Shown here: in pieces, positions 21,037 through 46,008 of the stretch | Layout of the letters: each line of letters starts with the position of its first letter | How positions within the stretch are numbered: the stretch's first letter is position 1 | IMG/VR virus record: IMGVR_UViG_3300027736_001324 | Location: 62,001 to 126,000 of that record | Direction: 5' to 3' (one strand) | DNA length: 64,000 nt | Notes under the pieces: generated by a model | The model's database searches: none | Told to the model about the DNA's origin: nothing | The model's input: only the letters and a program-made list of their open reading frames with translations | Position numbers and translations under genes: made by a program

Positions 21037-21052
21037 CGTAACTGAAAGTAAT

Positions 21053-22724: not shown

Positions 22725-22739
22725 AGCATTATTGTGTAA

Positions 22740-24041: not shown

Positions 24042-24067
24042 ACGAATTTCACTATGTTAAATAACGT

Positions 24068-24096
24068 ATTATACTGTATTTCTGCAATAAAGTCAA
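24068..24096 (-). promoter_or_regulatory. sigma70-type promoter of the lipoprotein gene
   Basis: Minus strand TTGACT-17 nt-TATAAT. Confidence 0.7.
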
Positions 24097-24125
24097 GTGT
24101 CTCGGGTTGCACACTAAATAATACT

Positions 24126-26855: not shown

Positions 26856-26857
26856 AG

Positions 26858-27310
26858 ATGATCACAAAAGATAAAAAGTTAGTTAAAAAACACTGGGGAC
26901 AGGAAGAATGGTTTGCAGATGGAGTAGCTACCCCATTTGCATTGAAACGTATATTGTTCTTAGCTGGGAACAGAACAAGTCTACAAGTGCATCAATATAA
27001 GTTTGAAACAACTTTTGTATTGTCTGGCACTGGCAAATTATATAAGTCTAAAGAACCATTGGATATAGAAAATTTCCTACATGTAGGAATGACCTCTAAG
27101 CAAGTTGAAGAATATGAAGCAACGTTTGATGTACTAGATTTGCATGAGGGTGTTTTATTCGACCTCAGCCCAGGATACGTTCATCGTGTTGTGGCTACTA
27201 CCGACTTAACTTTTATCGAAGCTAGCACTTGTGAATTGGATGATGTATTTCGTTTACAAGATGATGGTGGAAGAACACACGGGCGCATAAGCTACGAACA
27301 TGAAAATTAA
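26858..27310 (+). CDS. Cupin-domain protein (mannose-6-phosphate isomerase type II-like)
   Basis: 'V.K.WG.E', 'TSLQVH..K.ET', 'PGYVHR', 'DDVFRLQD'. Confidence 0.75.
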   Translation: MITKDKKLVKKHWGQEEWFADGVATPFALKRILFLAGNRTSLQVHQYKFETTFVLSGTGKLYKSKEPLDIENFLHVGMTSKQVEEYEATFDVLDLHEGVLFDLSPGYVHRVVATTDLTFIEASTCELDDVFRLQDDGGRTHGRISYEHEN

Positions 27311-28829: not shown

Positions 28830-29524
28830 AACAATTTTATAGTCTAAGTCAATATCCTGGCAAAACCGGAGAAACTTACTATCGTAAGTTTTTTAATTTA
28901 AAGAATTTGCCACACTCTTACAATGCATTAAAATGCGAAAATATAGTTGATAGTGTTACTGAATTAAAAAATATTAAAGCTAGTGGGTTCAGTGTCAGTA
29001 TGCCCTACAAGGCATCAGTCATACCTTTACTTGATGAAGTGGATAATTTAGTTACACAATTCAATAGTTGTAACACAGTAGTGAACGTCGACGGAAAGTA
29101 TATTGGTTACAATGCTGATTACTATGGGGCAATACATGTACTAAAAACTATCCTAGAACATGAACCAATTAACATATTGGGCAACGGTGCAATGGGCAAT
29201 ATGTTTAAAAAAATACTAGGTTCTAGGGCTAACATCTACAGTCGTTCATTGGGCAATTGGGACCAAATACAATCATTATCTGGAACTATAATAAACTGTA
29301 CTAGTTTAGGTACCTCTACTAAGGATAGTCCCTTCATTAAGTTGCCAAATATAAGCCATGTGATTGACTTGGCTATGAATGACAATGATTTAAAAAAACA
29401 AACCATCTCATCTGATATTAAATATATAGGCGGAAAAGAGTTTTACCAGCAGCAATTCAAAAAACAATTTGAAATTTACACCGGTATAACATTAAGCCAA
29501 TCAGAACTTGAAGATGATAATTAA
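28826..29524 (+). CDS. Shikimate dehydrogenase (AroE)-like oxidoreductase
   Basis: 'GFSVSMPYK', 'CNTV', 'GYNAD', 'ILGNGAMG', 'INCTSLG'. Confidence 0.75.
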   Translation: MKQFYSLSQYPGKTGETYYRKFFNLKNLPHSYNALKCENIVDSVTELKNIKASGFSVSMPYKASVIPLLDEVDNLVTQFNSCNTVVNVDGKYIGYNADYYGAIHVLKTILEHEPINILGNGAMGNMFKKILGSRANIYSRSLGNWDQIQSLSGTIINCTSLGTSTKDSPFIKLPNISHVIDLAMNDNDLKKQTISSDIKYIGGKEFYQQQFKKQFEIYTGITLSQSELEDDN

Positions 29525-29999
29525 TAAATTAGTTTTAGACGTTGACGGAGTACTTAACACCGGGCATATTTTATATAGCAGTCAGGGTAAGATGTATAAA
29601 GTCTTTGGTCCACACGACAAAGATGGATTCAAAATAATAAAAAAATATCTAAATGATATTACCTTTATCACAGCAGATGTGACTGGCTGGGATATAACCT
29701 ACGCCCGAATAGTAAACGATTGGAAGTATGATCCTTCACAATTAATATTGGTTACAGAAGAAGATCGTATGAGATGGTTTGAAAAGAATTGTGATTTTGA
29801 AACTACAGCATATATAGCAGACGGATACAATGATGCCCCTATACTAGATAGAGTTAAAGTTGGCATTGCACCCAAATCAGCAAGAATAGAAGCAAGATCA
29901 GCAGCAATATATGTAACACCTTCAAAAGCAGGACAAGGTGCTGTGTTAGATGCTTGCTTATACTTAGAAAGATTAATTAATGGACTTGAAGAAATTTAA
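29514..29999 (+). CDS. HAD phosphatase, KdsC-like
   Basis: 'LDVDGVL', 'K.F..HD..G', 'YIADGYND', 'AGQGAV'. Confidence 0.8.
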   Translation: MIINKLVLDVDGVLNTGHILYSSQGKMYKVFGPHDKDGFKIIKKYLNDITFITADVTGWDITYARIVNDWKYDPSQLILVTEEDRMRWFEKNCDFETTAYIADGYNDAPILDRVKVGIAPKSARIEARSAAIYVTPSKAGQGAVLDACLYLERLINGLEEI

Positions 30000-30996
30000 A
30001 TTGGGCGTGGGCCCTATGAGTCCAGAAGTAGTTGATATTTGTTTGGAATACAGCAAGGTACATAATTTTCCAATTATGATTATTGCTAGTAGAAATCAAG
30101 TTGATGCTAATAATGGATATTCATTTACCACTGAGAAATTAGTAGATTTTGTCAAATCTAATACAAACTATGATCCTGAAAGAATACTTATATGCAGAGA
30201 TCATTGCGGACCATACTACGGTGATGTTGACACTGGCTTATCAGTAGAGGATGCACTAAAGAATTGTATCAACACAATTGATTCTGACGTTAAGAATGGA
30301 TTTAATTTGATACATGTGGATATCAGCAGAGTAGCTAAAGAAGAAAGATACACAATAGCACACGAAATTATCAATTACATTTTGAAATTGAATCCCAATA
30401 TTATGTTAGAATTTGGTAGTGAGGACAATCTTAGCGTAGAAGAAAACAACAATCAAATACATTATGATGTTGAGTTTAGTAGACGCTATCTAAATCAGAT
30501 TAAATTTGTTGTTGGTCGTACAGGTAGTCTCACTAAACATAAACAAGTGGGTCATTTTGATGTGGAAGATAATATCAAACTAGCAGAGGTTATACACAAG
30601 CATGGATTCTTATTTAAAGAACATAATGCTGATTACTTAACTGAACAAGATATTGTATTAAGAAAACAAGCCGGAGTAGATTCGTTAAATATTGCACCAC
30701 AATTAGGAGTGGTACATACTAATGTACTTGTTAAGTTAGGTAAAGAATTTGAGGATGAGTATAATACATTTAAGAAATCTGTAATTGAAAAAGAAGTATG
30801 GAAGAAATGGATTACTCCTGAGATAACAGATGACGAAACTAAGTTATCAGTAAGCGGACATTATTTCTTAAACACAGTTGAAGCCAAACAGTTGTTAGAA
30901 AAAATTGATATAGCAAAGTTTAAAAATGTTTTGAAAACAGAGATATTTGAAGTACTTGATATATATAGAAAAGGACTTGGCAATGAGCATACTTAA
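29980..30996 (+). CDS. GatZ/KbaZ-family (tagatose-bisphosphate aldolase subunit / tagatose-6-P epimerase-like) TIM-barrel enzyme
   Basis: 'IASRNQVD...GY', 'RDHCGP', 'GFNLIHVD', 'KEHNADY', 'NIAPQLG'. Confidence 0.7.
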   Translation: MDLKKFKLGVGPMSPEVVDICLEYSKVHNFPIMIIASRNQVDANNGYSFTTEKLVDFVKSNTNYDPERILICRDHCGPYYGDVDTGLSVEDALKNCINTIDSDVKNGFNLIHVDISRVAKEERYTIAHEIINYILKLNPNIMLEFGSEDNLSVEENNNQIHYDVEFSRRYLNQIKFVVGRTGSLTKHKQVGHFDVEDNIKLAEVIHKHGFLFKEHNADYLTEQDIVLRKQAGVDSLNIAPQLGVVHTNVLVKLGKEFEDEYNTFKKSVIEKEVWKKWITPEITDDETKLSVSGHYFLNTVEAKQLLEKIDIAKFKNVLKTEIFEVLDIYRKGLGNEHT

Positions 30997-31108
30997 AAAA
31001 ATTAAATACTTCATTGTAGAACGATTGTTTGGTAAAATTACCAGAGAATTGCGCTATAGAAAAAGATTAAAAGAATTACGCAAACGAGACCCGTTTATTT
31101 ACAAATGA
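30983..31108 (+). CDS. Small basic 41-aa protein ending RKRDPFIYK, not in the ORF track
   Basis: AAGGA RBS; ATGA-coupled to the carbamoyltransferase gene. Confidence 0.65.
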   Translation: MSILKKIKYFIVERLFGKITRELRYRKRLKELRKRDPFIYK

Positions 31109-32586
31109 ACTATATAGGTATAAGTGCCGGTTTTCATGACGCTGCAATCAGCGTAGTTGATGACCATGGCAACATCTTGTTTGCTGGACATAGTGAACGC
31201 TATAGTAAGAATAAGCATGACAAAGATGTATGTGAAGAATTATTAACGGATGCATTAAAGCACACTAATTCATCATACTTAGAGTATCATTACTATGAAC
31301 GCCCGTGGTTAAAGTCATTACGTCAATTACGCACTGGTGAAGGCTTTACTTGGCCGTCATGGGAAAAGATATTAGGTAGTACATATCATCAGATGGGTAC
31401 ACCTAAAATACATACACATAGTCATCATCTATGTCATGCGGCTGCAGGATTTCAAACAAGTCCATTTGAAGATGCCACTGTTGTTGTGATTGATGCTATA
31501 GGAGAATTTGATACTATCACTATCTGGGATGCTTGGTACGATTTCTCAACGGGCAAAGCACAATACAAAAAACTATGGAGTCTTAAATATCCAGATAGCA
31601 TTGGATTATTCTATTCAGCAATGACTGAACGAGTTGGACTACGCCCATTAGATGAAGAATACATTCTAATGGGTATGGCTGCGTACGGAGAACCTAATCA
31701 TGTTGCTGATATGATTAATGAGTTAGTAGATAAAAAAGATATATTAACCTTCAAGCAAAATCTACACACTGGGGTTAGTAAAGATTTCTTAAAAGATGCT
31801 GATCCATTGGACATTGCTAGCAGTAGTCAACACTTAGTTGAGTACATGATTACTAGAGTAATGAGTAAAGCTAGAACATTGGGTCGTAGTAGAAATCTAG
31901 TATACGGCGGCGGGGTAGCATTGAATTGTTTAGCGAACAGACTATTAGGGAACTTCTATGAAAATATTTGGATTATGCCTAACCCTGGCGATGCGGGTAA
32001 TAGTCTCGGTGCAGCATGTCTTGGGCACAGTCGTAAAACTAATTGGACTGATGCTTTTCTTGGTCATAACATTCCTGGTAAGTATCCTGTTAACGGTTTA
32101 CTTGATGTGTTACTTACTGATAGGATTGTTGGTGTCGCTTCAGGACGAGCAGAGTTCGGCCCGAGAGCATTGGGAAATAGAAGTCTACTCGCAGACCCAA
32201 GAGGCGATGAAATTAAAGATAAAGTAAATGAGATTAAACGTAGACAAAAGTTTAGACCATTTGCTCCTGTCATATTAGAAGAATATGCTCATCAGTATTT
32301 TGAAATGCCTAAGCACTGGCATGATAGTAGATATATGCAGGTTATTAGTAAATGTAAATATCCTGAGAAATTCCCTGCTATTGCACATCACGATTGGACT
32401 AGTAGAGTACAAACTGTACCAAAAGATGGGTCTGGCATCAGAGAGTTATTAGAAAAATGGTATGTAATGACCGAATGCCCAATGTTATTGAACACAAGTT
32501 TAAACATACGTGGCGAGCCAATGGTCAACGACCATAGTGATGCTGATAGGTTTGAAAAACTATATGGAGTTAAGGTTTTGTCATAA
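31105..32586 (+). CDS. O-carbamoyltransferase (NodU/CmcH family)
   Basis: 'HDAA', 'ER...KH', 'HHLCHAA', 'GGVALNC', 'EFGPRALGNRS', 'RPFAP', 'LNTSLN.RGEP'. Confidence 0.92.
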   Translation: MNYIGISAGFHDAAISVVDDHGNILFAGHSERYSKNKHDKDVCEELLTDALKHTNSSYLEYHYYERPWLKSLRQLRTGEGFTWPSWEKILGSTYHQMGTPKIHTHSHHLCHAAAGFQTSPFEDATVVVIDAIGEFDTITIWDAWYDFSTGKAQYKKLWSLKYPDSIGLFYSAMTERVGLRPLDEEYILMGMAAYGEPNHVADMINELVDKKDILTFKQNLHTGVSKDFLKDADPLDIASSSQHLVEYMITRVMSKARTLGRSRNLVYGGGVALNCLANRLLGNFYENIWIMPNPGDAGNSLGAACLGHSRKTNWTDAFLGHNIPGKYPVNGLLDVLLTDRIVGVASGRAEFGPRALGNRSLLADPRGDEIKDKVNEIKRRQKFRPFAPVILEEYAHQYFEMPKHWHDSRYMQVISKCKYPEKFPAIAHHDWTSRVQTVPKDGSGIRELLEKWYVMTECPMLLNTSLNIRGEPMVNDHSDADRFEKLYGVKVLS

Positions 32587-32594
32587 GTAATTAA

Positions 32595-35500
32595 ATGCTA
32601 AGAGATGTATTTTATTACGGCGCCAAACCCAACGTTCACCCAAGAGAAAAATTTGCAACTTCACTAGAAGATGCTAGACAACAATCTACCACAGAACATT
32701 TTTGGATAATAAACGAATATTGTGATTATCGTAATTTTGATTGGGACTTTGATTTTGAATTTCTACCCGACGAAGATGTATGGGCAGAAGAACATAACAA
32801 CGTATGGCCTAGTATACATCAAAAAGATAGCGGCACATGGCTATGCACATCAAACCCAACCGAGATAATTATATATCGGGCTGACGTTGAACCAGTAAAA
32901 CGTAAAAACGAAACACACAAAAATTGGGTACTACTAGATTTAGTAGATGAAACTAAATTTGATTTTAGTTGGCATCCAGACCCAACTGACCCTCCCTATA
33001 TCTATACATGGGGATGTAAATATTTCCCAGTAGAATTGCAAGCCTGCTTAGAATATCATGTTCCGGGTGCAACAACCGTGAAGTACATGGATAGTATTGT
33101 AGAGTTGTTGCCACATACAGATCGATGGGTTGAAGTACAGAATATTGACAAATCATTATTTGATATGTCATGGAGACCTAGTCCATTGGATCCTCCTATG
33201 AATTATGTTTGGGGTAACAAACACATTGATGGCAAATTGAAATCTACACTAGAGTATCATATGCCCGGTGCGACTGATACAAAGTATATGTCTTATCCTT
33301 TGCCAGTATTACCTGAGTGGGATAGATGGCAAATCCATGACGAGATAGATAAAACTAGTTTTGATTTTAGTTGGAGACCAGATCCAAGAGAGCCGGCTTA
33401 TATATACCAATGGGGTAATAAACATTATAGTAGTGAATTATCTCCTACTATTTCCTATACTGCCCCGGGAGCAACTGAAGTTAAACATATGTCACAAGAT
33501 GTTAATCTAGCAGTAAGTAAAAATTGGGTTTTCTATCACGCAGTAAATAAAACTAAATTTGATTTGACATGGAGACCTGATCCAACTAGCCCACCTTATA
33601 TCTATGCATGGGGAAATAAATATGATCCAGCAGAAGTTAAACCTACGCTAGAATATATTGTACCCGGGGCAACCGAATACAAGTATATGGACGTTGTTGA
33701 TTTAGAGCCAGAATGGGATAGATGGAAAGAACATATTTTTGTTGATCATTCTAAATTTGATTTTAGTTGGAGACCAGATCCTAATCTACATGAGCCACCT
33801 TATATCTATGTGTGGGGCAACAAGTATGATCCGGCAGAAGTTAAGCCTACGCTAGAATATCATGTGCCCGGAGCAACTGAATATAAGTATATGAACATTG
33901 TTGATTTAGAGCCAGAATGGGATAGATGGCAAGAAATTCAACCAGTAGATAAAAGTAAGTTTGATTTTAGTTGGAGACCTGATCCTAACTTACACGAACC
34001 ACCTTATATCTATGTGTGGGGTAATAAACATATATCAGCAGAACTTAAATCAACAATAGAATATCATGTGCCGGGCGCTACAGAACGCAAGTACATGAGT
34101 CAGTTAGTAGAAGTGTTGCCTGAATTCAATCGGTGGAAAGAAATACAATCTATTGATAGAAACAAGTTTGATTTAACATGGAGACCAGATCCAAGAGAAC
34201 CAGCATATATTTATGTATGGGGAAATAAACATATACCGGGTGAACTGAAATCAACAATAGAATATCAATGTGACGGGGCTACTGAATATAAGTATATGGA
34301 TGAACTTGTTGAAGTATTACCTGAACAAGAACACTGGAAAGTTACGCAAGAAGTAAAAAACTTTGACTTTACCTGGAGACCTGATCCACGTGAACCTGCA
34401 TACATTTACACTTGGGGTAATAAACATATAGCAGCAGAACTTAAACCCACAATAGAGTATTATTGTGAGGGTGCAACAGAACACAAGTATATGGGTGAAG
34501 TTGATGTTGTTCCTGAAATGGATCGTTGGAATATTGTACAAGAAATTTCTAACACATTTGATTTGTCATGGAGACCTGACCCACGTGAACCTGCATATAT
34601 CTATACATGGGGTAACAAATATATACCCGGAGATATAAAACCTACACTTGAATATCATTGTGAGGGTGCTACCGAACGAAAGTATATGGGTGATGTTGAT
34701 GTATTGCCTGAGTTAGACAAGTGGAAAGAAATTCAATCAATAGATAAAACTAAGTTTGATATGTCGTGGAGACCAGACCCGCGTGAACCGGCATACATTT
34801 ACGTGTGGGGTAATAAACACGTTGAAGCTGAATTAAAGTCAACTATTGAATATCATTGTCCTGATGCAACCGAACGCAAGTACATGGGTGATGTTGAAGT
34901 ATTACCTGAATTAGATAAATGGAATATTGTACAACAAGTAGAAAACTTTGATTTTACATGGAGACCAGATCCAAGAGAACCTGCATATATCTACACATGG
35001 GGTAACAAGCATGTTAGTGCTGAATTGAAACCGACACTTGAATATCATTGTCCTGATGCAACTGAACGAAAATACATGGGTGATGTTGAAGTGTTACCGG
35101 AGTTTGACAAATGGAAAGAAATACAGCCAATAGATAACACTAAGTTTGATATGTCGTGGAGACCTGATCCACGTGAACCTGCATATATTTACACATGGGG
35201 TAATAAACATGTTAGTGCTGAGTTTAAGCCAACACTTGAATATTATTGTGAAGGTGCAACAGAGCGCAAGTACATGGGTGATGTTGAAGTTTTACCTGAG
35301 TTTGACAAATGGAATATTGTACAACAAGTAGAAAACTTTGATTTTACATGGAGACCAGATCCAAGAGAACCTGCATATATTTATGTATGGGGTAACAAAT
35401 GGATACAAGGAGATTTAAAATCTACACTTGAGTATCACTGTGAAGGGGCAACTGAATTCAAGTATATGAAAGAATTATTAGATGTTGCACCAATACACGA

Positions 35501-38500
35501 CCACTGGAACATTATACAAAAAGTAGAAAACTTTGATTTTAGTTGGAGACCTGATCCACGTGAACCTGCATATATTTATATATGGGGTAATAAACATATA
35601 GCAGGTGAATTAAAACCAACACTTGAATTTCATTGCCAAGGTGCTATTGAACGTAAATTTATGGGTACTGCTGAAGTAGCACCAGAATGGGATAGATATC
35701 AAATATTAATACCAGTAGATAAAACTAGCTTTGACTTCACGTGGAGACCAGATCCCAGAGAACCTGAATTTATATATGTATGGGGTAATCAATCTAACAT
35801 TGCAGAAAAAGAACCTACTATTGAATATCATTGTCCTGGCGCTACTGAACGAAAATACATGAATGACAATGTGGCTAAGACATTACCTGTAGTTGAAAAT
35901 TGGAAGATATTAATTTCAGTAGAAAACTTTGATTTTAGTTGGAGACCTGATCCTAATAGCCCTCCCTACATCTATATATTTGGTAATCAATGGCATGATG
36001 CTATGACAGAGCCTACATTAGAATATCATGTAGAGGGCGCTGCCGAAAAGAAATATGTCACAGAGATTGTTCCTACTGCAACAAAGACTCAGGAGTATTG
36101 GAAAACTCTTATTCCAATCGAATCATTTGATTATAGCTGGAGACCCAATCCACATTCAACCCCTTACATATATGTATTTGGTAATCAATGGCATGATAGC
36201 ATAACTGAACCCACAATAGAATATCATTGTCCTGGCGCAACGGATAAGAAATACATTACTGATGTAATTGCATTAGCCAAATCAACAGCAACAGACAATC
36301 ATTGGAAACGATTAATACCGATTGAATCATTTGATTATAGCTGGAGACCTGATCCTAATAGTCCTCCTTATATCTATGTGTTTGGTAATAAATGGAACGA
36401 TGCTGCAACTGAACCATCGGTTGAATATTATGTTGACGGCGCAACTGAACACAAATATGTATCTGACCCTGTTGCTATTCCTAAAGCAGAGATACAATAC
36501 TGGGCTATCAATAATAATGATGACTTAGAAACATTTGATTTTACATGGAGACCCAATCCACATAGTCCATCACAAATATATCAATGGCAAGATAATGGAC
36601 CAAGGTATACGGTTCCTGGCGCAACAGATGTGGTGTTAATGGAACACACTGGAAAGACAAAGAAAGTAATCGTTAATCGTTACAAGATTAAAACAACATT
36701 GGAAGATTTAATTAACGAACATCCGGAAGAAGTATTCTGGGCTATCAACCCTGATTTGAATTATGATAAGTTTGACTTTAGTTGGCGACCCAACGAAGAA
36801 AACTTTAGACATATAAATGTATTTGGCAATGAGTATAGCAAAAATACACAAACGTATTATATTAATAGTCCAATGTATATGCTTGGAAACAAAGAATATA
36901 ATTATGTAGAGGATCAATCAGTGCAGGTTGATAGTAATCTAAGTATGTTCTTTATTGATAAAAGTAATAAGGAAAGTACAAGTAGATTTAATGAATTAAA
37001 ATTACGCTATCCACAATTACAAAAGACAAGATATCTTAATAGTTGGGTAGATACAATCAATCGTTGTATTACTAAATCAGAAACTAAATTGTTCTGGGTA
37101 CTGAATAGTGAATTAGATTATAGTGAGTTTGATTTTGACTTCTATCCTAGCCCATGGCAAATGAATATGATACATGTGTTTGGAACACAATGGAGTCATT
37201 GGGGTAACACCTACATGGTTAATAAAGAAACCTTTGCAGAAGATACAAAGTATGTAAAGATTATTGAACATCTATCTAACTTGAATTTTGTAAAACAAAG
37301 AAAAGCAAAAGCAACAAATGTATTGTATGACATTGTTTATATTGACCATGGTAATAAAGATTTGTCTGATATTAATAACTTAATCATCAAGTATGAAAAG
37401 AGTTATTTGACTACTTTTAGAAACATGTTAGATAAACTTTCAGTAAAGAAAGAACATTATGTTTGGGTAGCTAGTACTATATGTGATTACACAAACTTTG
37501 ACTTTACCTATATATGTGATCCGTTTGCCAAAGAGCAATTACATGTATTTCCAAGTGATAAGCAGAAGTTTGGTGATACGTTTTTAATTGATGTGAATAG
37601 ATTACGTGAATTAGTAGATGATATGACTACATTGGAAGACTACAATAAGATTAACTTTAATCAAAGTCAAAGAGTAAAAAGATTAGAAGCACCTGTGATT
37701 ATTACTGAGGAAGATACTCATGTATCTAGTATTAACACGGAGTTTGATTTTCCGTATGCTGTATTCACCACAGTTGATAATAAAGACATTAAAGTATTGG
37801 ATAATGAACCAATGAACATATGGAGTTATGAGACTAAAAATATCATAATAACCAGTGAAGGTGGAACAAGAATTATTGTTCCCAAAGAAGCAAGAAAATA
37901 TATTAAAAACGAATTATATGATTATCCATATATAATGCCCAATGACAAATTAGCAAAGTCTAATCCGTTGGACATTGTTTTCTTTAGTAACGGTGAAGCC
38001 TGTGCTGAGGCAAATTATAAACATTTGCTTAAACTAACTGAAAAGCTACCCAACAATGTATTAAGAATTGACGGTATAAATGGTCGTGTAAAAAGCCAAC
38101 ATGCTGCTGCTGAAAGTAGTGCTACCCCATGGTACTTCTTAGTCAATGCTAAACTGAAAGTAGATTCAAAGTTTAATTTTAATTGGCAACCGGACAGATT
38201 GCAGATACCTAAGCATTATATTTTCCATGCCACCAACCCTGTAAACGGATTAGTATATGGTCACCAAGCTATCGTTGCTAACAACAAGAAACTTACCTTA
38301 GCAAACTTTGGAACTGGATTAGACTTTACTATGGACAGTGAGCATGAAGTTGTTGCTATTAATAGCGGCATTGGTATGTATAATAGTAGTGAGTGGGATA
38401 CATGGCGTACTGCATTCCGCGAATGTATTAAACTTAAATTATCCAAAACTATGGAAAATAAAGAACGTCTAGATGTATGGTTAAACGTTGGCCTTGGTGA

Positions 38501-38639
38501 GTTTGCCCAATATAGTATACAAGGTGCCAAAGATGCAGTAGAATACTATTATGAAGTTGAAAGTGACTTTAAAAAATTGCGTTTAAGTTATGATTGGGAT
38601 TGGTTAAGAACATTCTATGAGACTAAATACAAACTATGA
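32595..38639 (+). CDS. 2014-aa protein with ~19 tandem ~65-aa W-R-P-D-P repeats and terminal GT-like domains
   Basis: Repeat unit FD(F/L/M)(S/T)WRPDPREPAYIY.WGNK....KPT(L/I)EYH..GATE.KYM; the C-terminal domain resembles ORF 16029-16979. Confidence 0.8.
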   Translation: MLRDVFYYGAKPNVHPREKFATSLEDARQQSTTEHFWIINEYCDYRNFDWDFDFEFLPDEDVWAEEHNNVWPSIHQKDSGTWLCTSNPTEIIIYRADVEPVKRKNETHKNWVLLDLVDETKFDFSWHPDPTDPPYIYTWGCKYFPVELQACLEYHVPGATTVKYMDSIVELLPHTDRWVEVQNIDKSLFDMSWRPSPLDPPMNYVWGNKHIDGKLKSTLEYHMPGATDTKYMSYPLPVLPEWDRWQIHDEIDKTSFDFSWRPDPREPAYIYQWGNKHYSSELSPTISYTAPGATEVKHMSQDVNLAVSKNWVFYHAVNKTKFDLTWRPDPTSPPYIYAWGNKYDPAEVKPTLEYIVPGATEYKYMDVVDLEPEWDRWKEHIFVDHSKFDFSWRPDPNLHEPPYIYVWGNKYDPAEVKPTLEYHVPGATEYKYMNIVDLEPEWDRWQEIQPVDKSKFDFSWRPDPNLHEPPYIYVWGNKHISAELKSTIEYHVPGATERKYMSQLVEVLPEFNRWKEIQSIDRNKFDLTWRPDPREPAYIYVWGNKHIPGELKSTIEYQCDGATEYKYMDELVEVLPEQEHWKVTQEVKNFDFTWRPDPREPAYIYTWGNKHIAAELKPTIEYYCEGATEHKYMGEVDVVPEMDRWNIVQEISNTFDLSWRPDPREPAYIYTWGNKYIPGDIKPTLEYHCEGATERKYMGDVDVLPELDKWKEIQSIDKTKFDMSWRPDPREPAYIYVWGNKHVEAELKSTIEYHCPDATERKYMGDVEVLPELDKWNIVQQVENFDFTWRPDPREPAYIYTWGNKHVSAELKPTLEYHCPDATERKYMGDVEVLPEFDKWKEIQPIDNTKFDMSWRPDPREPAYIYTWGNKHVSAEFKPTLEYYCEGATERKYMGDVEVLPEFDKWNIVQQVENFDFTWRPDPREPAYIYVWGNKWIQGDLKSTLEYHCEGATEFKYMKELLDVAPIHDHWNIIQKVENFDFSWRPDPREPAYIYIWGNKHIAGELKPTLEFHCQGAIERKFMGTAEVAPEWDRYQILIPVDKTSFDFTWRPDPREPEFIYVWGNQSNIAEKEPTIEYHCPGATERKYMNDNVAKTLPVVENWKILISVENFDFSWRPDPNSPPYIYIFGNQWHDAMTEPTLEYHVEGAAEKKYVTEIVPTATKTQEYWKTLIPIESFDYSWRPNPHSTPYIYVFGNQWHDSITEPTIEYHCPGATDKKYITDVIALAKSTATDNHWKRLIPIESFDYSWRPDPNSPPYIYVFGNKWNDAATEPSVEYYVDGATEHKYVSDPVAIPKAEIQYWAINNNDDLETFDFTWRPNPHSPSQIYQWQDNGPRYTVPGATDVVLMEHTGKTKKVIVNRYKIKTTLEDLINEHPEEVFWAINPDLNYDKFDFSWRPNEENFRHINVFGNEYSKNTQTYYINSPMYMLGNKEYNYVEDQSVQVDSNLSMFFIDKSNKESTSRFNELKLRYPQLQKTRYLNSWVDTINRCITKSETKLFWVLNSELDYSEFDFDFYPSPWQMNMIHVFGTQWSHWGNTYMVNKETFAEDTKYVKIIEHLSNLNFVKQRKAKATNVLYDIVYIDHGNKDLSDINNLIIKYEKSYLTTFRNMLDKLSVKKEHYVWVASTICDYTNFDFTYICDPFAKEQLHVFPSDKQKFGDTFLIDVNRLRELVDDMTTLEDYNKINFNQSQRVKRLEAPVIITEEDTHVSSINTEFDFPYAVFTTVDNKDIKVLDNEPMNIWSYETKNIIITSEGGTRIIVPKEARKYIKNELYDYPYIMPNDKLAKSNPLDIVFFSNGEACAEANYKHLLKLTEKLPNNVLRIDGINGRVKSQHAAAESSATPWYFLVNAKLKVDSKFNFNWQPDRLQIPKHYIFHATNPVNGLVYGHQAIVANNKKLTLANFGTGLDFTMDSEHEVVAINSGIGMYNSSEWDTWRTAFRECIKLKLSKTMENKERLDVWLNVGLGEFAQYSIQGAKDAVEYYYEVESDFKKLRLSYDWDWLRTFYETKYKL
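32960..36620 (+). repeat. Intragenic tandem repeat array, period ~190-205 bp
   Basis: 'tggagacc' anchors recur about every 195 bp; 34917-34990 and 35307-35380 are identical over 74 bp. Confidence 0.9.
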
Positions 38640-39360: not shown

Positions 39361-39507
39361 ATGTTTATTGGGTTAATGGGTGTTGATAATGATGGCAAAA
39401 CCATGTATACTCCAAATGGTAATAAGATATGGTTCACATTGCCATGGGGACTAGCGTGGAAATTACAAGAGATACAACATTGGATCGCTAAGAAAACTTG
39501 GCGATAA
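39361..39507 (+). CDS. Small 48-aa hypothetical protein (MFIGLMGVD...)
   Basis: Strong AAGGAG RBS. Confidence 0.6.
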   Translation: MFIGLMGVDNDGKTMYTPNGNKIWFTLPWGLAWKLQEIQHWIAKKTWR

Positions 39508-39514
39508 ATAGTAG

Positions 39515-39818
39515 TTATTGCTGTATGAAGCAAAGAGAAAAGTGTTCTGGACGCGGGTTCGACTCCCGCCAGGTCCACCATAAACATAATGTCTACTGGT
39601 GAATGAGATAACAATGCTCATAATAAAAGTCCAAACAGTATGTTTATGATGGGCCTGACATTGGTTTCGACAGGGCAACAAGTAAATGAGTGGACAGCAC
39701 AAGAGCAACCTTGTAAAAAGAAGAAAAACCGTAAACGCAAACGACGAATTGTTCGCATTAGCAGCCTAAACGCTGCTTAGGGTTTCGGTAGGTTTCCTCG
39801 TAACAGAATAACCTACCA
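39515..39818 (+). ncRNA. ssrA: Circularly permuted (two-piece) tmRNA: acceptor piece ~39515-39580, intervening segment 39581-39650, coding piece from 39651, tag ANDELFALAA (39737-39769)
   Basis: The T-arm and CAGGTCC-ACCA end lie upstream of the 5' end GGGCCTG...TTCGAC. The acceptor stem pairs with a G3-U70 alanine determinant. The tag ORF is gca aac gac gaa ttg ttc gca tta gca gcc taa. Confidence 0.92.
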
Positions 39819-39832
39819 TTAAGTTAATACGT

Positions 39833-40504: not shown

Positions 40505-40650
40505 ATATAATTTTCCTTTATCAACTAGCATACATTACGCAAACAGTATACTTACTTTGCGAGAATACATAATTTATTTGACTGTATTTCTACTACTAAA
40601 TATTAGTCTAGCCTGAGTAATATCAGGTTTTTATTTAAAGGAAATTTAAT

Positions 40651-41535
40651 ATGAAGAAAATCGCACTTGCGACAATTTTAGCCGCTGCATCTCTTGCAGC
40701 ATCAGCACAAGTAGCCGTTTACGGTAAAATGCGTGTGTATGAAGAATCAGTAACAGTTGGATCTGCGGCAGCAGTAACAGCACTAACCAACGATACAAGT
40801 CGTTTAGGTTTTAAAGGTACTGAAGCATTAGGTGGCGGACTATCTGCTAACTTCACAATTGAAACTGGTATCGGTGCAGATGCTCCAGCAGCATCAACAT
40901 TGGGCGACAGAACTATGATTGTAGGTTTGTCAAACAGTTTAGGTTCAGTTAATGTTGGTCGTGACAAGCACACAATCGCACGTACACTTGATAACTATGA
41001 CGCAATGGGTAATGTATACGGTTCTAGTACCGCAGTCATTCACGCTGCTCAAGGTTCACGTTTCAGTAATGCGTTGTTTGTTTCAGCTACTCCAATGGCT
41101 GGTTTAACTGTTAACTACATCAATAGCAATAGCGAAGTAGCAGGCGTTAATAACCCACAAGCTGCTAGTATTGAATTTACTCGTGGTCCAATCAGTGCTA
41201 CTGTAGCAAATTTTGATAACGGTACAACAAGTACTTCAACAATCTATGGTGCAAAAGTTAAAGTTGAAAAGACTGGTACTACAGTTTTCGCTACATACTC
41301 TGATGACAAAGTTTCAGGTGTAACTACAAGTGGTAAAAGTATTGGTGTTAATCACCCAGTTACTGGTTCATTGATGGCACTTGCTAGCTATGGTGAGAAC
41401 AATACTACTAAAGCATTAGACTTAGGCGCAAGCTATAGTTTAAGCAAGCGTACAACAGTTCACGCTCGTTACATCAAAGAAGATGCAGCAGCAACAACTA
41501 CTAAGTACGCATTGGGTATGGAACACAATTTCTAA
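40651..41535 (+). CDS. Outer-membrane porin (betaproteobacterial general porin type)
   Basis: Signal peptide; 'SRLGFKGTEALGGGLSA.F.IE'; 'YSLSKRT'; C-terminal 'GMEHNF'. Confidence 0.9.
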   Translation: MKKIALATILAAASLAASAQVAVYGKMRVYEESVTVGSAAAVTALTNDTSRLGFKGTEALGGGLSANFTIETGIGADAPAASTLGDRTMIVGLSNSLGSVNVGRDKHTIARTLDNYDAMGNVYGSSTAVIHAAQGSRFSNALFVSATPMAGLTVNYINSNSEVAGVNNPQAASIEFTRGPISATVANFDNGTTSTSTIYGAKVKVEKTGTTVFATYSDDKVSGVTTSGKSIGVNHPVTGSLMALASYGENNTTKALDLGASYSLSKRTTVHARYIKEDAAATTTKYALGMEHNF

Positions 41536-41557
41536 TCCAATCTAATCACATTGATTA

Positions 41558-41578
41558 TAAAGGGGCTTTGCCCCTTTA
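41558..41578 (+). terminator. Hairpin after the porin gene
   Basis: taaaggggc-ttt-gccccttta. Confidence 0.6.
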
Positions 41579-41583
41579 GCCAT

Positions 41584-41601
41584 ATGTAACATTACTGTCA
41601 C
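41584..41601 (+). promoter_or_regulatory. Pho box (PhoB-binding site) upstream of pstS
   Basis: ATGTAAC-ATTA-CTGTCAC: two half-sites 11 bp apart, matching the CTGTCAT-N4-CTGT(C/A)A(C/T) consensus, 39 nt before the pstS ATG. Confidence 0.75.
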
Positions 41602-41640
41602 AATTCAATAACTAAATATTTGTGTAACAAAGGAGATTAC

Positions 41641-42636
41641 ATGAAAAAACTATTTGCTATTCTATTAGCGGCTGTAACATTTGCAGCATCAGCACAAGAC
41701 ATTACAGGAGCCGGGGCAACATTCCCGGCTCCGTTGTATTCAAAGTGGGCAAGTGAATATAACAAAGCAACTGGCACTAAAATCAACTATCAATCAGTTG
41801 GTTCAGGAGCTGGCATTAAACAAATTGAAGCAAAGACAGTTACATTCGGTGCAAGTGATATGCCACTTACAGATGACAAACTAGCAGCGTCAGGGTTGTT
41901 TCAGTTTCCGACAGCAATCGGCGGAGTTGTCCCAGTTATCAATGTCAATAACATTGCTCCAGGACAATTGAAATTAACAGGCACAGTTATCGCTGATGTC
42001 TTTTTAGGTAAGATCACTAAATGGGATGACAATGCTATTAAGGCATTGAACCCAACATTAGTTTTGCCTAATCAAGATATTACTGTAGTTCGTAGAGCAG
42101 ATGGTAGTGGTACTACATTTATTTGGACAAACTATCTAAGCAAAGTAAGCAAAGAGTTTAAAGAAGTTATCGGTGAAGGTACTGCTGTAAATTGGAAAGT
42201 TGGAGCAGGCGGTAAGGGCAATGAAGGCGTAGCACAAATGGTTCGTCAACTACCGGGCTCATTGGGATATGTAGAGTTTGCTTATGTTAAACAAACTAAA
42301 ATGAATTGGGTTAACGTACAAAATAGTGCTGGAACTTGGGTGGCCCCAACAGAAGATGCTTTTAAAGCAGCGGCTGCTAATGCTGATTGGAACAAAAGTT
42401 ACTATCAGATACTAACTAATCAAGCAGGCAAAGAAGCATGGCCTATCAGTGGTGCTACATTTATTCTTGTTTACATCAAACCAGAAGATGTTGCTAAGTC
42501 TAAAGCAGCAATGACATTCTTTGATTGGGCATTCAGTAACGGAGATAAAGCAGCAGATGATTTAGATTATGTTGCACTACCAACATCAGTTAAGAACAAG
42601 ATTCGTGCTGATTGGAAACATTTAGGATTATTTTAA
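41641..42636 (+). CDS. pstS: Phosphate ABC transporter substrate-binding protein PstS
   Basis: 'ITGAGATFP', 'GSGAG', 'FGASD', 'RRADGSGTT', 'GKGNEG', 'WPI'. AAGGAG RBS precedes the ATG at 41641. Confidence 0.96.
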   Translation: MKKLFAILLAAVTFAASAQDITGAGATFPAPLYSKWASEYNKATGTKINYQSVGSGAGIKQIEAKTVTFGASDMPLTDDKLAASGLFQFPTAIGGVVPVINVNNIAPGQLKLTGTVIADVFLGKITKWDDNAIKALNPTLVLPNQDITVVRRADGSGTTFIWTNYLSKVSKEFKEVIGEGTAVNWKVGAGGKGNEGVAQMVRQLPGSLGYVEFAYVKQTKMNWVNVQNSAGTWVAPTEDAFKAAAANADWNKSYYQILTNQAGKEAWPISGATFILVYIKPEDVAKSKAAMTFFDWAFSNGDKAADDLDYVALPTSVKNKIRADWKHLGLF

Positions 42637-42681
42637 ACCGACCGCAAGATTGAGCGGAAGCTGGAACTCGTAACCAGTACT

Positions 42682-42703
42682 AAGGGCCGAAAGGCTCTTT
42701 TTT
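42682..42703 (+). terminator. Intrinsic terminator after pstS
   Basis: aagggcc-gaaa-ggctctt followed by a T-run. Confidence 0.75.
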
Positions 42704-42734
42704 ATTATAACAATAAGAGTGAGAACAACAATGT

Positions 42735-43496
42735 ATGAAAACTTACCGATCAATATTTGTATCCGATGTTCATTTGGGTACAAAAGATAGTCAAGCCGAA
42801 AAATTAAATAACTTTCTGAAACACAATTCATGTGATACATTATACTTAATAGGAGATATAATCGATGCCTGGAGAATTCAACAAAACAAATGGAGATGGA
42901 AACAAAGCCACACTAATGTGGTCCGTCGTGTTCTCGGTCATGCTAAACGCGGCACTCGTGTTGTTTATATTGCAGGTAATCACGATGAATTTTTAAGACC
43001 TATGATACCATATGGGTTCAGTTTTGGACTCATTGAGATACATAATCAAATAGAACATATAGGTGCAGATGGTAATCATTATCTTGTAGTACACGGAGAT
43101 ATGTTTGACGGTATAACTAGATTGGCACCTTGGATAGCATTTTTAGGAGACAAAGCATATGATGTCATTTTATCAGTTAATAGCAAATTCAATTGGCTAC
43201 GCCATCGCATGGGTTTTGGGTATTTTAGTCTTAGTAAATATCTCAAAGCAAGAGTAAAGAAAGCAGTAGACTTCATATTCCACTTTGAAAAAAATCTCGC
43301 AACCTATTGTAAAAAACGTGGGTTTGATGGTGTTATCTGTGGACACATTCACCATGCAGAGATTAAAGACATTGATGGTATTAAATACATGAATGATGGT
43401 GACTGGGTTGAATCCTGTACAGCACTTGTAGAACATTGGGACGGTCGTTGGGAAATAGTTACTTGGACTAAGGAGAAGGACAATGAAATTAAGTGA
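42735..43496 (+). CDS. plcP: PlcP-like metallophosphoesterase (intracellular phospholipase C; family often annotated UDP-2,3-diacylglucosamine diphosphatase)
   Basis: 'YRSIFVSDVHLG', 'LYLIGDIID.W', 'W.W.QSH..VV', 'GNHDEFLR', 'HGD.FD', 'CGHIH', 'YMNDGDWVESCTALVE'. Confidence 0.75.
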   Translation: MKTYRSIFVSDVHLGTKDSQAEKLNNFLKHNSCDTLYLIGDIIDAWRIQQNKWRWKQSHTNVVRRVLGHAKRGTRVVYIAGNHDEFLRPMIPYGFSFGLIEIHNQIEHIGADGNHYLVVHGDMFDGITRLAPWIAFLGDKAYDVILSVNSKFNWLRHRMGFGYFSLSKYLKARVKKAVDFIFHFEKNLATYCKKRGFDGVICGHIHHAEIKDIDGIKYMNDGDWVESCTALVEHWDGRWEIVTWTKEKDNEIK

Positions 43497-44193
43497 TAAA
43501 ATTACTATAGTTGTACCCTGTAAGAATGAAGAAGATTATATTCATCATCTATTAGATTCATTACGTTCACAAAACATAGGTGATACTAGAGTCATTATTG
43601 CTGATTGCTCTACGGATAACACCAGACAAGTTATACGTGATAACAGTTTTGAATTGAATGTTGAGATCATTGAGGGAGGGCCTGTTTCAGTGGCCAAGAA
43701 TAATGGAGCAAGATTAGTTACTACTCCCTACATCTTATTCATTGACGCCGATGTTCGTTTTTTTAAATACGATGTGATCCATGATGCTGTCAATAAAATT
43801 GAATCTATGAACTTGGATTTAGTTGGATTGAACATCAAGTGCTATGACAATGACATAAGAGCAAAATTTGGGTTTACTATTTTTAACACTATAAATCACA
43901 CATTGAAATATTTCTCACCCTTTGCGGTTGGAGCATTTATGCTAACTCGGAAAGATAAGTTTGATGAGTATGGTGGATTCCCTGAACAGTTTTCAACGTC
44001 AGAGGACTATTTCTTGTCTAGGAAATATAGTCCTAAGAAGTTTAGAATAGTCAAACATCACTTTGGGCAAGACAGTCGTAGATTTAAGAAAATGGGTTAT
44101 ATGGGAATGGCTAAGTATCTAGTTAAGAACTTTGTCAATCGCAACAATAAGAAGTACTGGGACAGTTTAGACTCATCTAAATATTGGAATTAA
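43483..44193 (+). CDS. Glycosyltransferase family 2
   Basis: 'IVVPCKNEE', 'STDNT', 'A.NNGA', 'FIDAD', 'GGF', 'SED', 'SRRF'. Overlaps the plcP-like gene. Confidence 0.9.
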   Translation: MKLSDKITIVVPCKNEEDYIHHLLDSLRSQNIGDTRVIIADCSTDNTRQVIRDNSFELNVEIIEGGPVSVAKNNGARLVTTPYILFIDADVRFFKYDVIHDAVNKIESMNLDLVGLNIKCYDNDIRAKFGFTIFNTINHTLKYFSPFAVGAFMLTRKDKFDEYGGFPEQFSTSEDYFLSRKYSPKKFRIVKHHFGQDSRRFKKMGYMGMAKYLVKNFVNRNNKKYWDSLDSSKYWN

Positions 44194-44834
44194 CGTTTCA
44201 TTAAATCGTTAGTAAAATCTAACAGCAACTCATGGTGTCTACCACCATGCCATTTGTCACGCATATAACTATAACTATCATACCAAAATGGTTCTGATTC
44301 TGGATGACAACCAATTAGTCCTATGCGTTTTTGATATATTGCCATTGGATCGCCGTTAGCGTATGTAGCAATTGTTTTGAATTTATGTCTATTACCAACT
44401 AAAGCACACCCATCATAGAAGAACATATTCATGCGTTCATCTTTCCATGTTATTGGTAAATTTTTAGCATGTGGTCTACGTGTATCAGTTCCGGGTTGTT
44501 TGATGTATTGTACGGCATCAACATCATCTAACACATTTAGGTAATAACTACCCGCCCAATATGCACCCATACAGATACCTAAATATCTGCCACCGCCGTG
44601 GATAAAATCTTTTACCCGTTTTCCGTTATTTTTGAATAGTTGTTTGAATGTATCACTATCACCTATTCCGCCGGGAACGGCAATCATGTCTACATCATCA
44701 AAGAAATCATATTCCAATTTGTTTTTGCTAAAGATTTTGAAGTTATAGTATTCACTCAAAGCCTTCATCATCCCATTTCCAGATTGCACGGAACATTTTG
44801 GGTCATACAAAAATAATGCGATTGTGGGTTTCAT
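44190..44834 (-). CDS. Class I glutamine amidotransferase-like (BPL_N-type) protein
   Basis: 'VPGG', 'GGRYLGICMGAY' nucleophile elbow, 'GCHPE'. Confidence 0.8.
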   Translation of the reverse strand: MKPTIALFLYDPKCSVQSGNGMMKALSEYYNFKIFSKNKLEYDFFDDVDMIAVPGGIGDSDTFKQLFKNNGKRVKDFIHGGGRYLGICMGAYWAGSYYLNVLDDVDAVQYIKQPGTDTRRPHAKNLPITWKDERMNMFFYDGCALVGNRHKFKTIATYANGDPMAIYQKRIGLIGCHPESEPFWYDSYSYMRDKWHGGRHHELLLDFTNDLMKR

Positions 44835-44861
44835 CACAACTATTTATGTTAGGGAAAACAC

Positions 44862-44890
44862 TTGACATAAATATCTCAGGATAGTATAAT
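44862..44890 (+). promoter_or_regulatory. Early sigma70-type promoter
   Basis: TTGACA-17-TATAAT. Confidence 0.85.
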
Positions 44891-44896
44891 GTTATT

Positions 44897-45151
44897 ATGA
44901 GAATAGAAAAGTCTTTGGATTGGCAACAGGTGTCTAGTAAAATACGCACTGATTTGAATAATATTGGGTACAATCCAGACTTAAAACGGATGTTTAATAA
45001 CATCAACACTATGGTATCAGAATTAAGTAAATTAGAAGTAAATGGGCGTAGATTACATACTGATAATTTTACTAAAGAGCCATTAGAAAAAATTAACAAA
45101 GCAATAGACCATTTAGAAAAATTAATTCTAATGGGTTTACTTATGAAATGA
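44897..45151 (+). CDS. Hypothetical protein
   Basis: ATG 6 nt after the -10 box; coupled to the next gene. Confidence 0.65.
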   Translation: MRIEKSLDWQQVSSKIRTDLNNIGYNPDLKRMFNNINTMVSELSKLEVNGRRLHTDNFTKEPLEKINKAIDHLEKLILMGLLMK

Positions 45152-46008
45152 ATCATTCAGAATTAACAATCGTTGCCGTATACGGTCATAATAGTGGAGC
45201 AAGTGCAATCCCATCAATAGTAAAAAGCATGACTGAATTACCTGGTAGTCGTGGATTGCTACTATCAGTAATTAAGCCAGATGACTTGCCTGAGGAAATT
45301 GAATGGAAACATATTTACCCCTTCAACTATAATCGTTATAGTGTTTTTATGATGCATTCATTGTATGCATTTATTGAAACTGAATATTGTTTGGTGGTGC
45401 AAGATGATGGATGGGTGTTGAATGGCAAAAACTTTAAACCTGAATTTTATAATTATGATTATATTGGGTCACCGGGACATTGTGCATTAACATTAAACGA
45501 GAAATCAGAAATAACAGGTATCTATCTTAACTTTAGATGGACTGAACCTGAGTTTGCTGATGTTGAAAATTTACATATAGTGCAAAATGGTGGGTTTAGT
45601 TTACGTTCTAAAAGATTTTTAGAATCTTGTAATAAACATGGATTACCACATTGGGGAGTAGAATCTATTCCAATGAAACAACCCGATGGAACTGATAAAC
45701 CCTGGAACCCAATTTGGAATGAGGATGTACATCTTACTGCATTGTTCAAACCAAAATTAGAAAAGATTGGGTATAGGTTTGCGCCACTTGAAGTGGCAAA
45801 ATCTTTTAGTATAGAATATTTGTTCCCGGCATTACATACTGAAGGATTTGATATAGCACTTAGTAATGCTTTAGGACAACATGGCCCAACTAGAAAATTG
45901 GCTACACTCAATGAGGTTCATTTCAAAAAACATACAGTTGGTATTGGCGGCGAACATCATGTTGTAAATTGGTTCATAGAGAACGGGTACAAAGTAAAAA
46001 TGGTCTAA
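45148..46008 (+). CDS. DUF5672-like glycosyltransferase-family protein
   Basis: 'LVVQDDG', 'YDYIG', 'NGGFSLRSK', 'NEDV', 'A..FS.E'. Confidence 0.7.
   Translation: MNHSELTIVAVYGHNSGASAIPSIVKSMTELPGSRGLLLSVIKPDDLPEEIEWKHIYPFNYNRYSVFMMHSLYAFIETEYCLVVQDDGWVLNGKNFKPEFYNYDYIGSPGHCALTLNEKSEITGIYLNFRWTEPEFADVENLHIVQNGGFSLRSKRFLESCNKHGLPHWGVESIPMKQPDGTDKPWNPIWNEDVHLTALFKPKLEKIGYRFAPLEVAKSFSIEYLFPALHTEGFDIALSNALGQHGPTRKLATLNEVHFKKHTVGIGGEHHVVNWFIENGYKVKMV

Follow-up and report, generated by a model that had tools for sequence, protein, structure and literature searches.

Bacteria that are starved for phosphate can exchange membrane phospholipids for phosphorus-free lipids, and the PlcP-Agt pathway is the main bacterial route for this exchange. 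The corresponding lipid renovation operon is known from S. meliloti (SMc00171), P. aeruginosa (PA3219-PA3218), B. cenocepacia (BCAL2364-2365), Phaeobacter MED193 and SAR11, and all characterised PlcP partners named in the papers that we read are Agt, a GT4 enzyme (PMC8528852, PMC13691135). Phages, on the other hand, are known to carry Pho-regulon auxiliary genes such as pstS, phoA and phoH (cyanophages and pelagimyophages; PMC12379486 for pelagimyophage pstS), and these known examples act on uptake or on external organic phosphorus. A third related protein is LpxH, the UDP-2,3-diacylglucosamine diphosphatase, which has a calcineurin-like fold with a helical lipid-binding cap and is the usual database label for PlcP-family genes.

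We report that an uncultured freshwater jumbo phage carries, next to a phosphate-uptake gene, an orthologue of PlcP together with a GT2-family glycosyltransferase gene, which suggests that phages may make starving hosts exchange phospholipids for sugar lipids and free phosphorus during infection. The window, i.e. the whole stretch of DNA that was analysed, comprises 64 kb of IMG/VR record IMGVR_UViG_3300027736_001324. It has a large terminase subunit that is 48-50% identical to those of the jumbo phages PA5oct and Phosso. The host is probably a betaproteobacterium, although the support is limited to clues, namely a beta-type tmRNA, a Porin_4 porin and a similar contig binned with a Polynucleobacter MAG. 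The features of the region are as follows:

41584..41601 (+), Pho-box-like element with two TGTMAY half-sites 11 bp apart (ATGTAAC and CTGTCAC, separated by ATTA)
41613..41618 (+), -10-like hexamer TAAATA, 11 nt after the Pho-box-like element; its function as a -10 element is inferred
41641..42636 (+), pstS, periplasmic phosphate-binding protein with a signal peptide
42660..42709 (+), two hairpins after pstS, GCTGGAACTCGTAACCAG and then the terminator AAGGGCCGAAAGGCTCTT followed by a T-run
42735..43496 (+), plcP, PlcP-family metallophosphoesterase and predicted intracellular phospholipase C
43483..44193 (+), GT2-family glycosyltransferase, proposed DAG glycosyltransferase and functional analogue of Agt
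44190..44837 (-), BPL_N/class I glutamine amidotransferase-like gene, a recurrent neighbour of function unknown (possible accessory)

A preceding sequence-only reading had proposed that the Pho box, pstS, a PlcP-like phospholipase C and a glycosyltransferase constitute a phosphate-starvation lipid-remodelling module. All the features it listed were confirmed, including all four metallophosphoesterase motifs in the translation, and every part of its interpretation that could be tested computationally was supported, although for Pho regulation of plcP-GT2 in this window the support is only indirect.

In profile searches the pstS product scored 429 bits against the NCBIfam PstS equivalog NF008171 (cutoff 339) and 389 bits against TIGR00975 (cutoff 205), and it matched PHROG 5385 "phosphate transporter subunit" with E=7e-72. 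The translation starts with a Sec-type signal peptide, MKKLFAILLAAVTFAASA/QD, and the gene is 88% identical to the pstS of L006, one of the related phage contigs. With respect to expression, the one true metatranscriptome examined, from a lake, holds a single 227-nt contig identical to 42401-42627, i.e. within pstS, while three "RNA" runs are probably DNA. A scan for intrinsic terminators identified a terminator-like stem at 42682-42699, followed by a T-run, between pstS and plcP. The first hairpin is conserved after pstS in the related loci L034, L074 and L094, and L072 carries a compensatory variant.

The metallophosphoesterase matches Pfam Metallophos (PF00149, E=2e-12), and residues D11, H13, D41, N82, H83, H120, H204 and H206 are invariant in 45 diverse homologues. 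It is 53.9% identical to PA3219 and 48.4% identical to SMc00171, in both cases over at least 96% of the length; these two experimentally characterised PlcP enzymes, which were anchored by synteny (PA3219 next to agt1 (PA3218), cyaB and azoR3; SMc00171 next to sinR and sinI), are 46% identical to each other (PMC8528852). In trees computed with IQ-TREE the clade holding the window protein and both PlcPs was separated from five LpxH sequences with 100/100 support, and an AU test rejected forcing the phage clade to join LpxH (p=0.004). Moreover, the LpxH equivalog models NF003743 and TIGR01854 scored 46 and 33.7 bits against cutoffs of 134 and 190, respectively, and Ralstonia carries both paralogues. 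The AF2 model (pLDDT 89) has an LpxH-like fold with a helical cap and its twelve nearest solved structures are all LpxH, including the lipid-binding helical cap, but the identity to LpxH is only 17-20%. The genomic context is also with a glycosyltransferase and Pho genes, not with lipid A genes.

The downstream gene overlaps plcP by 14 nt and encodes a 236-aa protein that hits only GT2-type Pfam families (PF00535, E=5e-21, 75.8 bits against a cutoff of 23.3). D88 and D90 of its FIDADV motif are invariant, the AF2 model (pLDDT 84) has a GT-A fold, and Foldseek matched it to GT2 structures with E of about 1e-10. Hence, it differs from Agt, which is a GT4 enzyme with a GT-B fold; this had been raised as a caveat in the sequence-only reading and is largely answered by comparison. 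In 80 related viral loci, plcP is followed by this GT2 in 56 and by an Agt-like GT4 in 23, never both, such that all 79 loci with room downstream have a glycosyltransferase gene directly after plcP. The GT4 is 38% identical over its full length to Agt1, which makes MGDG (PMC8528852). On a tree of plcP alleles 85-93% identical to that of the window the partner type changes at least 3, and by parsimony 15, times, and L094 has the same backbone as the window with GT4 exactly replacing GT2.

The GT2-PlcP pair also occurs in cells. Of 10 GT2 homologues of at least 40% identity in genome contigs, 9 are adjacent to a PlcP homologue; homologues of 41-69% identity in L107, SAR86 genomes and an uncultured bacterium have this arrangement, and L107 adds a UDP-glucose dehydrogenase and a lipase. 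The closest cellular counterpart is found in marine SAR86 (SAG contigs L109-L111), where the two genes (GT2 60-62% and PlcP 46% identical) are adjacent and overlapping but in inverted order, GT2 then plcP, with the alkaline phosphatase gene phoX lying divergently next door; this pair is experimentally uncharacterised. A search of cultured phage genomes gave no GT2 match at E<=1e-8, and among plasmids there were only two distant hits, in (hydrolase or PAP2)-GT2-VTT/LssY_C operons, which suggest a lipid context but are not decisive. No similarity was detected between the GT2 and a GT21 "ceramide glucosyltransferase" that follows a PlcP-like gene in Pannonibacter. The BPL_N-like gene matches PF09825 (E=3e-10), and a homologue flanks the plcP-GT pair in about 20 of the 80 viral loci, on either strand; its nearest Atlas clusters are mostly viral and this search gave no function.

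The Pho-box-like element, ATGTAACATTACTGTCAC, matches 10 of the 14 specified positions of the E. coli consensus CTGTCATNNNNCTGTCAT. On its own this is not significant: the window holds 52 matches of that quality on both strands, giving about 0.03 expected in a 120-nt upstream region, and a relaxed half-site pattern occurs once in the window against about 1.1 expected by chance. The support is instead comparative. The same architecture (tandem TGTMAY half-sites, about 11 nt, then TAAATA) precedes 10 of 11 pstS and 39 of 80 plcP genes in the related viral loci, against about 0.02 expected per 150 nt (about 2 expected by chance). The hexamer follows the box at 10-11 nt in most of these promoters, with wider spacings in a few, and some have three tandem half-sites. 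However, the box could be a phage-specific promoter element rather than a PhoB site, and in this window plcP-GT2 has no Pho box of its own and lies after two hairpins with a T-run, such that its phosphate dependence here is doubtful. Linkage of pstS and plcP recurs in 11 of the 80 viral loci and in pelagimyophage Mosig.

Taken together, we consider it more likely than not that the region is an auxiliary metabolic module that the phage acquired from bacterial Pho regulons. In the mechanism that we propose, host PhoB would bind the box at 41584-41601 in a phosphate-starved host and drive pstS, raising phosphate capture in the periplasm. The PlcP orthologue, made by read-through of the pstS terminator or from a phage promoter, would cleave the phosphodiester bond of host membrane glycerophospholipids to yield diacylglycerol (DAG) and a phosphorylated head group, whose phosphorus becomes available for phage nucleotide synthesis. 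The translationally coupled GT2 would then transfer a sugar from a UDP-sugar to DAG, and the resulting phosphorus-free glycolipid would keep the membrane intact until lysis. The catalytic activities, DAG as acceptor (which rests on genomic context only), PhoB binding, expression of plcP-GT2 in this particular arrangement and a benefit to the phage are inferred. Compared with the bacterial PlcP-Agt operon, this module is encoded by a lytic-type jumbo phage, has no dagK and has a GT2 in place of Agt. Compared with the known phage Pho-regulon genes, it shares a pstS with a signal peptide behind a Pho-box-like promoter, but would tap and replace the membrane phospholipid pool of the host.

Other explanations appear less likely. 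That the GT2 does not act on DAG, but on a polyprenyl phosphate, an LPS or capsule precursor or a PlcP-released head group, with PlcP acting alone or with host Agt, is possible but in our view unlikely. GT2 enzymes mostly use non-DAG acceptors, and the structural neighbours (including GtrB, ArnC, PcManGT and TarP) are generic GT-A enzymes with sugar, teichoic-acid or polyprenyl-phosphate acceptors and do not identify the acceptor. Moreover, distant homologues in Photobacterium and Parasedimentitalea lie in (alpha/beta-hydrolase or PAP2)-GT2-VTT/LssY_C operons, which could concern polyprenyl-phosphate. Against this stand the mutual exclusion and repeated exchange of GT2 and Agt-like GT4 in the same slot after closely similar plcP alleles, the GT2-PlcP adjacency that survives an inversion of gene order in SAR86, and the 14-nt overlap in the window.

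We regard it as equally unlikely that the cassette primarily remodels the envelope for the protection of the phage, i.e. by blocking superinfection by competing phages or altering grazing or antibiotic susceptibility, with phosphorus release as a side effect. Bacterial lipid remodelling is reported to change phage adsorption and predator-prey outcomes (PMC9938194, PMC9457565, PMC9804370), the window also carries a porin gene and a large sugar-modification island, so this phage invests in surface changes, and plcP-GT2 lacks its own Pho box here; but the linkage to pstS, the pstS-type boxed promoter in many relatives and the location next to phoX in SAR86 point to phosphate economy, and the two roles are not mutually exclusive. 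An LpxH function within a lipid A/LPS auxiliary gene set, as suggested by JGI, GenBank and KEGG-based annotation (LpxH or K03269) and by the nearest solved structures, is very unlikely given the model scores, identities, tree and AU test; SMc00171 and PA3219 carry the same "LpxH" annotation yet are experimentally PlcP (PMC8528852).

At least 525 IMG/VR contigs and more than 8000 metagenome proteins are relatives. In the literature that we searched, no paper describes phage plcP, combines PlcP with phage auxiliary genes or pelagimyophages with phospholipase, and the Mosig announcement and the pelagimyophage survey do not mention the gene. A broader possibility, which we judge about as likely as not, is that phosphate-starvation lipid renovation is a widespread and so far unrecognised phage auxiliary function. 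Hundreds of freshwater jumbo-phage contigs carry PlcP-family genes, as do a pelagimyophage and a freshwater cyanophage, and in the jumbo-phage contigs plcP forms a mobile cassette, often behind a Pho-box-like element, with one of two interchangeable glycosyltransferases. The small GT2 would then be a new family of diacylglycerol glycosyltransferase, also occurring in the abundant marine group SAR86, and infection would convert host phospholipid into glycolipid and redirect membrane phosphorus into virions.

Phage "lpxH" hits in auxiliary-gene surveys are probably plcP and are filed under the wrong pathway, and, if lipid renovation is a widespread phage function, genes now counted as "lpxH/LPS biosynthesis" would need re-reading. 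The phage pstS and plcP promoters, often Pho-box-like, offer a direct test of how phages plug into host two-component regulation. Finally, phospholipids are a sizeable, mobilisable phosphorus store in bacteria, and a phage-encoded version of the PlcP-Agt pathway would add a new class to the known phosphorus-related auxiliary genes (pstS, phoA, phoH), acting not on uptake but on internal reallocation of host membrane phosphorus, with consequences for phosphorus cycling in phosphorus-limited lakes and oceans.

The window is phage DNA of about 36% G+C, encoding a large terminase subunit 48-50% identical to those of jumbo phages (Sinorhizobium phage Phosso and Pseudomonas phage PA5oct), a T4-type ssDNA-binding protein, virion proteins and many auxiliary-looking genes, while no cultured phage is similar at the DNA level. 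It also has two giant ORFs (229-10800 and 32595-38639; 3523 and 2014 aa), and between these lies a long island (about 14000-32600) of sugar/glycan-modification-type genes, including a radical SAM protein and a Nol-like carbamoyltransferase (31105-32586). The features in the region of interest are, in order:

39468-39826, + strand, two-piece (permuted) tmRNA of the betaproteobacterial type
+ strand, 2OG-Fe(II) oxygenase
40651-41535, + strand, Porin_4 porin
41641-42636, + strand, pstS
42735-43496, + strand, metallophosphoesterase
43483-44193, + strand, GT2 glycosyltransferase, overlapping the previous gene by 14 nt
44190-44837, − strand (convergent), BPL_N/class I glutamine amidotransferase-like gene

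The tmRNA scores 112 bits on Rfam RF01850 and 129 bits on RF04321, ARAGORN predicts the tag ANDELFALAA, and it is a clue that the host is a betaproteobacterium; a similar tmRNA 3' end is visible upstream of plcP in L005, one of the related cassette-carrying contigs. The Gram-negative porin (E=5e-23) lies immediately upstream of the pstS promoter, has homologues beside the cassette in L005 and in the related viral contigs L034 and L094, and could increase outer-membrane permeability, possibly to phosphate. The pstS gene passes both NCBIfam equivalog cutoffs (429 bits against 339, and 389 against 205), and a terminator-like hairpin with a T-run is present at 42682-42699. Moreover, all the metallophosphoesterase motifs on which the sequence-only reading had based its PlcP assignment are present, and that observation is confirmed.

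The metallophosphoesterase family is referred to in databases as "UDP-2,3-diacylglucosamine diphosphatase" (LpxH). However, the LpxH equivalog models score only 46 and 34 bits against cutoffs of 134 and 190, and solved LpxH chains match at only E of about 1e-4. A tblastn search of a plasmid collection hit records that are really chromosomal DNA, and these supplied two experimentally characterised anchors: P. aeruginosa PA3219, recognised by its neighbours (a downstream overlapping "glycosyltransferase family 1" gene, i.e. agt1, PA3218, together with cyaB and azoR3) and 53.9% identical to the window protein, and S. meliloti SMc00171, which lies beside sinR and sinI and is 48.4% identical. Since PA3219 is itself 46-47% identical to the Sinorhizobium and Phaeobacter PlcPs (PMC8528852), the phage protein is as close to each characterised enzyme as they are to each other.

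Two phylogenetic trees support this assignment. In an 86-row tree, the window protein and its phage relatives sit inside the clade that also holds PA3219 and SMc00171, while LpxH from E. coli, Ralstonia, Neisseria, Acinetobacter and Legionella lies across a very long branch. In a careful 40-row tree the same split has 100/100 support, and forcing the phage clade to join LpxH costs 34 log-likelihood units (p-AU 0.004). Ralstonia solanacearum carries both paralogues, and the metal ligands are invariant in 45 diverse homologues. The AlphaFold model (pLDDT 89) is most similar to LpxH structures over its full length, including the helical cap that holds acyl chains in LpxH, which fits a lipid substrate. 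Hence, grouping with LpxH, which the sequence-only reading had named as evidence against its proposal, was not observed, and we consider membership of the PlcP family highly likely.

The window glycosyltransferase is a GT2 with a DxD motif and a predicted GT-A fold, and it is not a GT4 like Agt. A structure search does not reveal its acceptor, and the decisive evidence is comparative. At least 525 IMG/VR contigs encode a relative of the phage PlcP, and the 80 best are 85-93% identical and come from contigs of up to 525 kb. In 56 of the 80, the same GT2 (65-88% identical) follows plcP directly, in 23 a roughly 335-aa GT4 follows instead, and one contig ends too early to tell; no locus has both. 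The GT4 is 38% identical over its full length to P. aeruginosa Agt1, the expression of which in E. coli makes monoglucosyl-DAG (PMC8528852), and part of this phage population thus carries a canonical plcP-agt operon. The BPL_N-like gene recurs next to the plcP-GT pair in about 20 of the 80 loci, upstream or downstream and on either strand; its nearest Atlas clusters are mostly viral, and it may be a third member of the module.

On a tree of the plcP alleles, the partner type changes 15 times by parsimony, and at least 3 changes are forced by well-supported branches. Specifically, contig L094 (1-4700) shares the backbone of the window (40511-45152) at about 78% DNA identity, i.e. the upstream region, the pstS 3' hairpins, plcP and the BPL_N gene, but an Agt-like GT4 replaces the GT2 exactly between plcP and the BPL_N gene. 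It also lacks pstS, such that the Pho-box-like element is followed directly by the pstS 3' hairpins and plcP. Two unrelated glycosyltransferase folds alternating in one slot behind closely similar plcP genes is what non-orthologous replacement of one function would look like.

A scan of 185,579 species genomes with the GT2 alignment returned 15 loci, and of the 10 with at least 40% identity all but one (a Patescibacteria MAG) are again adjacent to a PlcP homologue. Three SAR86 single-cell genomes have the inverted order GT2 then plcP (60-62% and 46% identity) in a clearly cellular context, with the phoX alkaline phosphatase gene divergently next door. In one of these (L111, 4458-7432) the neighbours are a TonB-dependent receptor, an alternative oxidase and a cyclopropane-fatty-acid-synthase-like gene, and the pair is a candidate uncharacterised lipid-renovation operon of SAR86. 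An uncultured bacterium has two copies on a 1.26-Mb contig. In L107 (2738-5929), a contig binned with a Crocinitomicaceae MAG, plcP-GT2 is followed by a UDP-glucose/GDP-mannose dehydrogenase-like gene and a class 3 lipase, which hints at further lipid turnover and at a supply of UDP-glucuronate, the donor made by UDP-glucose dehydrogenase and used for glucuronosyl-DAG. On a Pannonibacter plasmid (L016, 1472-3513) a more distant PlcP-like gene (31% identical) overlaps a downstream "ceramide glucosyltransferase" (GT21), a third glycosyltransferase family found directly after a PlcP-like gene, to which the window GT2 shows no detectable similarity. We therefore consider DAG glycosylation the most likely function of the GT2, with moderate confidence given that PlcP is a PLC, although this is an inference from context.

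With respect to phosphate regulation, the 18-bp element at 41584 matches the E. coli Pho-box consensus at 10 of 14 positions; such matches are common (52 in the window), and alone it proves nothing. Related contigs show the same layout, two or three TGTMAY half-sites at 11-bp spacing, then 10-11 nt and then TAAATA, in front of pstS in 10 of 11 viral loci and in front of plcP in 39 of 80, against about 2 expected from the background density. In the 64-kb window the pattern occurs only once, before pstS, and it is therefore not a general phage promoter. In L005 (4105-4160), from a relative of the window phage, a Pho-box-like element with TAAATA also precedes an SBP_bac_3 solute-binding protein and an SDF-family symporter. 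Sharing the half-site promoter layout with pstS, the archetypal Pho-regulon gene, is good evidence that plcP-GT cassettes in these phages are co-regulated with pstS, most simply by host PhoB, although the box could be a phage-specific promoter element rather than a PhoB site, and a Pho-type promoter in front of the window pstS is likely.

In this window, however, plcP-GT2 has no box of its own and follows two hairpins and a T-run, and its expression would need read-through or another promoter; phosphate regulation of plcP-GT2 in this exact arrangement is accordingly only tentative. The first hairpin (42660-42677; GCTGG-AACTCGTAA-CCAGC) is conserved upstream of plcP in the related contigs L034, L072, L074 and L094, across pstS alleles only 51-53% identical to the window's protein, with L072 having a compensatory GCCGG...CCGGC version, and it is probably a terminator or processing element. 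The related contig L084 has the same gene order as the window and keeps a separate box before plcP. The linkage of pstS and plcP recurs in 11 of 80 loci, and also in the cultured pelagimyophage Mosig, where the two genes are divergent; the intergenic region (L001, 5851-6000) contains TTTAACA and CTTAACA repeats, with one adjacent pair at 11-bp spacing resembling the cyanobacterial and SAR11-style Pho box. The only true metatranscriptome that holds the sequence has one 227-nt contig identical to the 3' end of pstS, which neither supports nor refutes transcription of plcP-GT2.

Contigs L003, L005 and L006 carry the cassette in unrelated neighbourhoods. Moreover, metagenome contigs (runs X2-X4) join the pstS terminator (42703/42704) directly to the end of the BPL_N gene (44196) and skip exactly the plcP-GT2 cassette (1491-1492 nt), which looks like a presence/absence polymorphism among related phages, although the flanks are short (30-37 nt), the likeness threshold was 85% and the evidence is tentative. 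The cassette therefore behaves as a discrete moron. More than 8000 metagenome proteins match at E<=1e-10, the best at about 90% identity, and the contigs examined come from lake samples.

The PlcP-Agt pathway is well established in bacteria (PMC8528852, PMC13691135) and phage pstS is well known, including in pelagimyophages (PMC12379486). In the literature searched, no paper combines PlcP with phage auxiliary genes, or pelagimyophages with phospholipase; the Mosig genome announcement and the pelagimyophage survey do not discuss the gene, and viral auxiliary-gene surveys list "lpxH" under LPS biosynthesis. We hold the model as a whole with moderate confidence, the enzyme activities, the GT2 acceptor and phosphate-dependent expression being inferred. 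While the pathway itself is known, what is new is that it is phage-borne and modular, with a previously unrecognised GT2 as the likely alternative to Agt.
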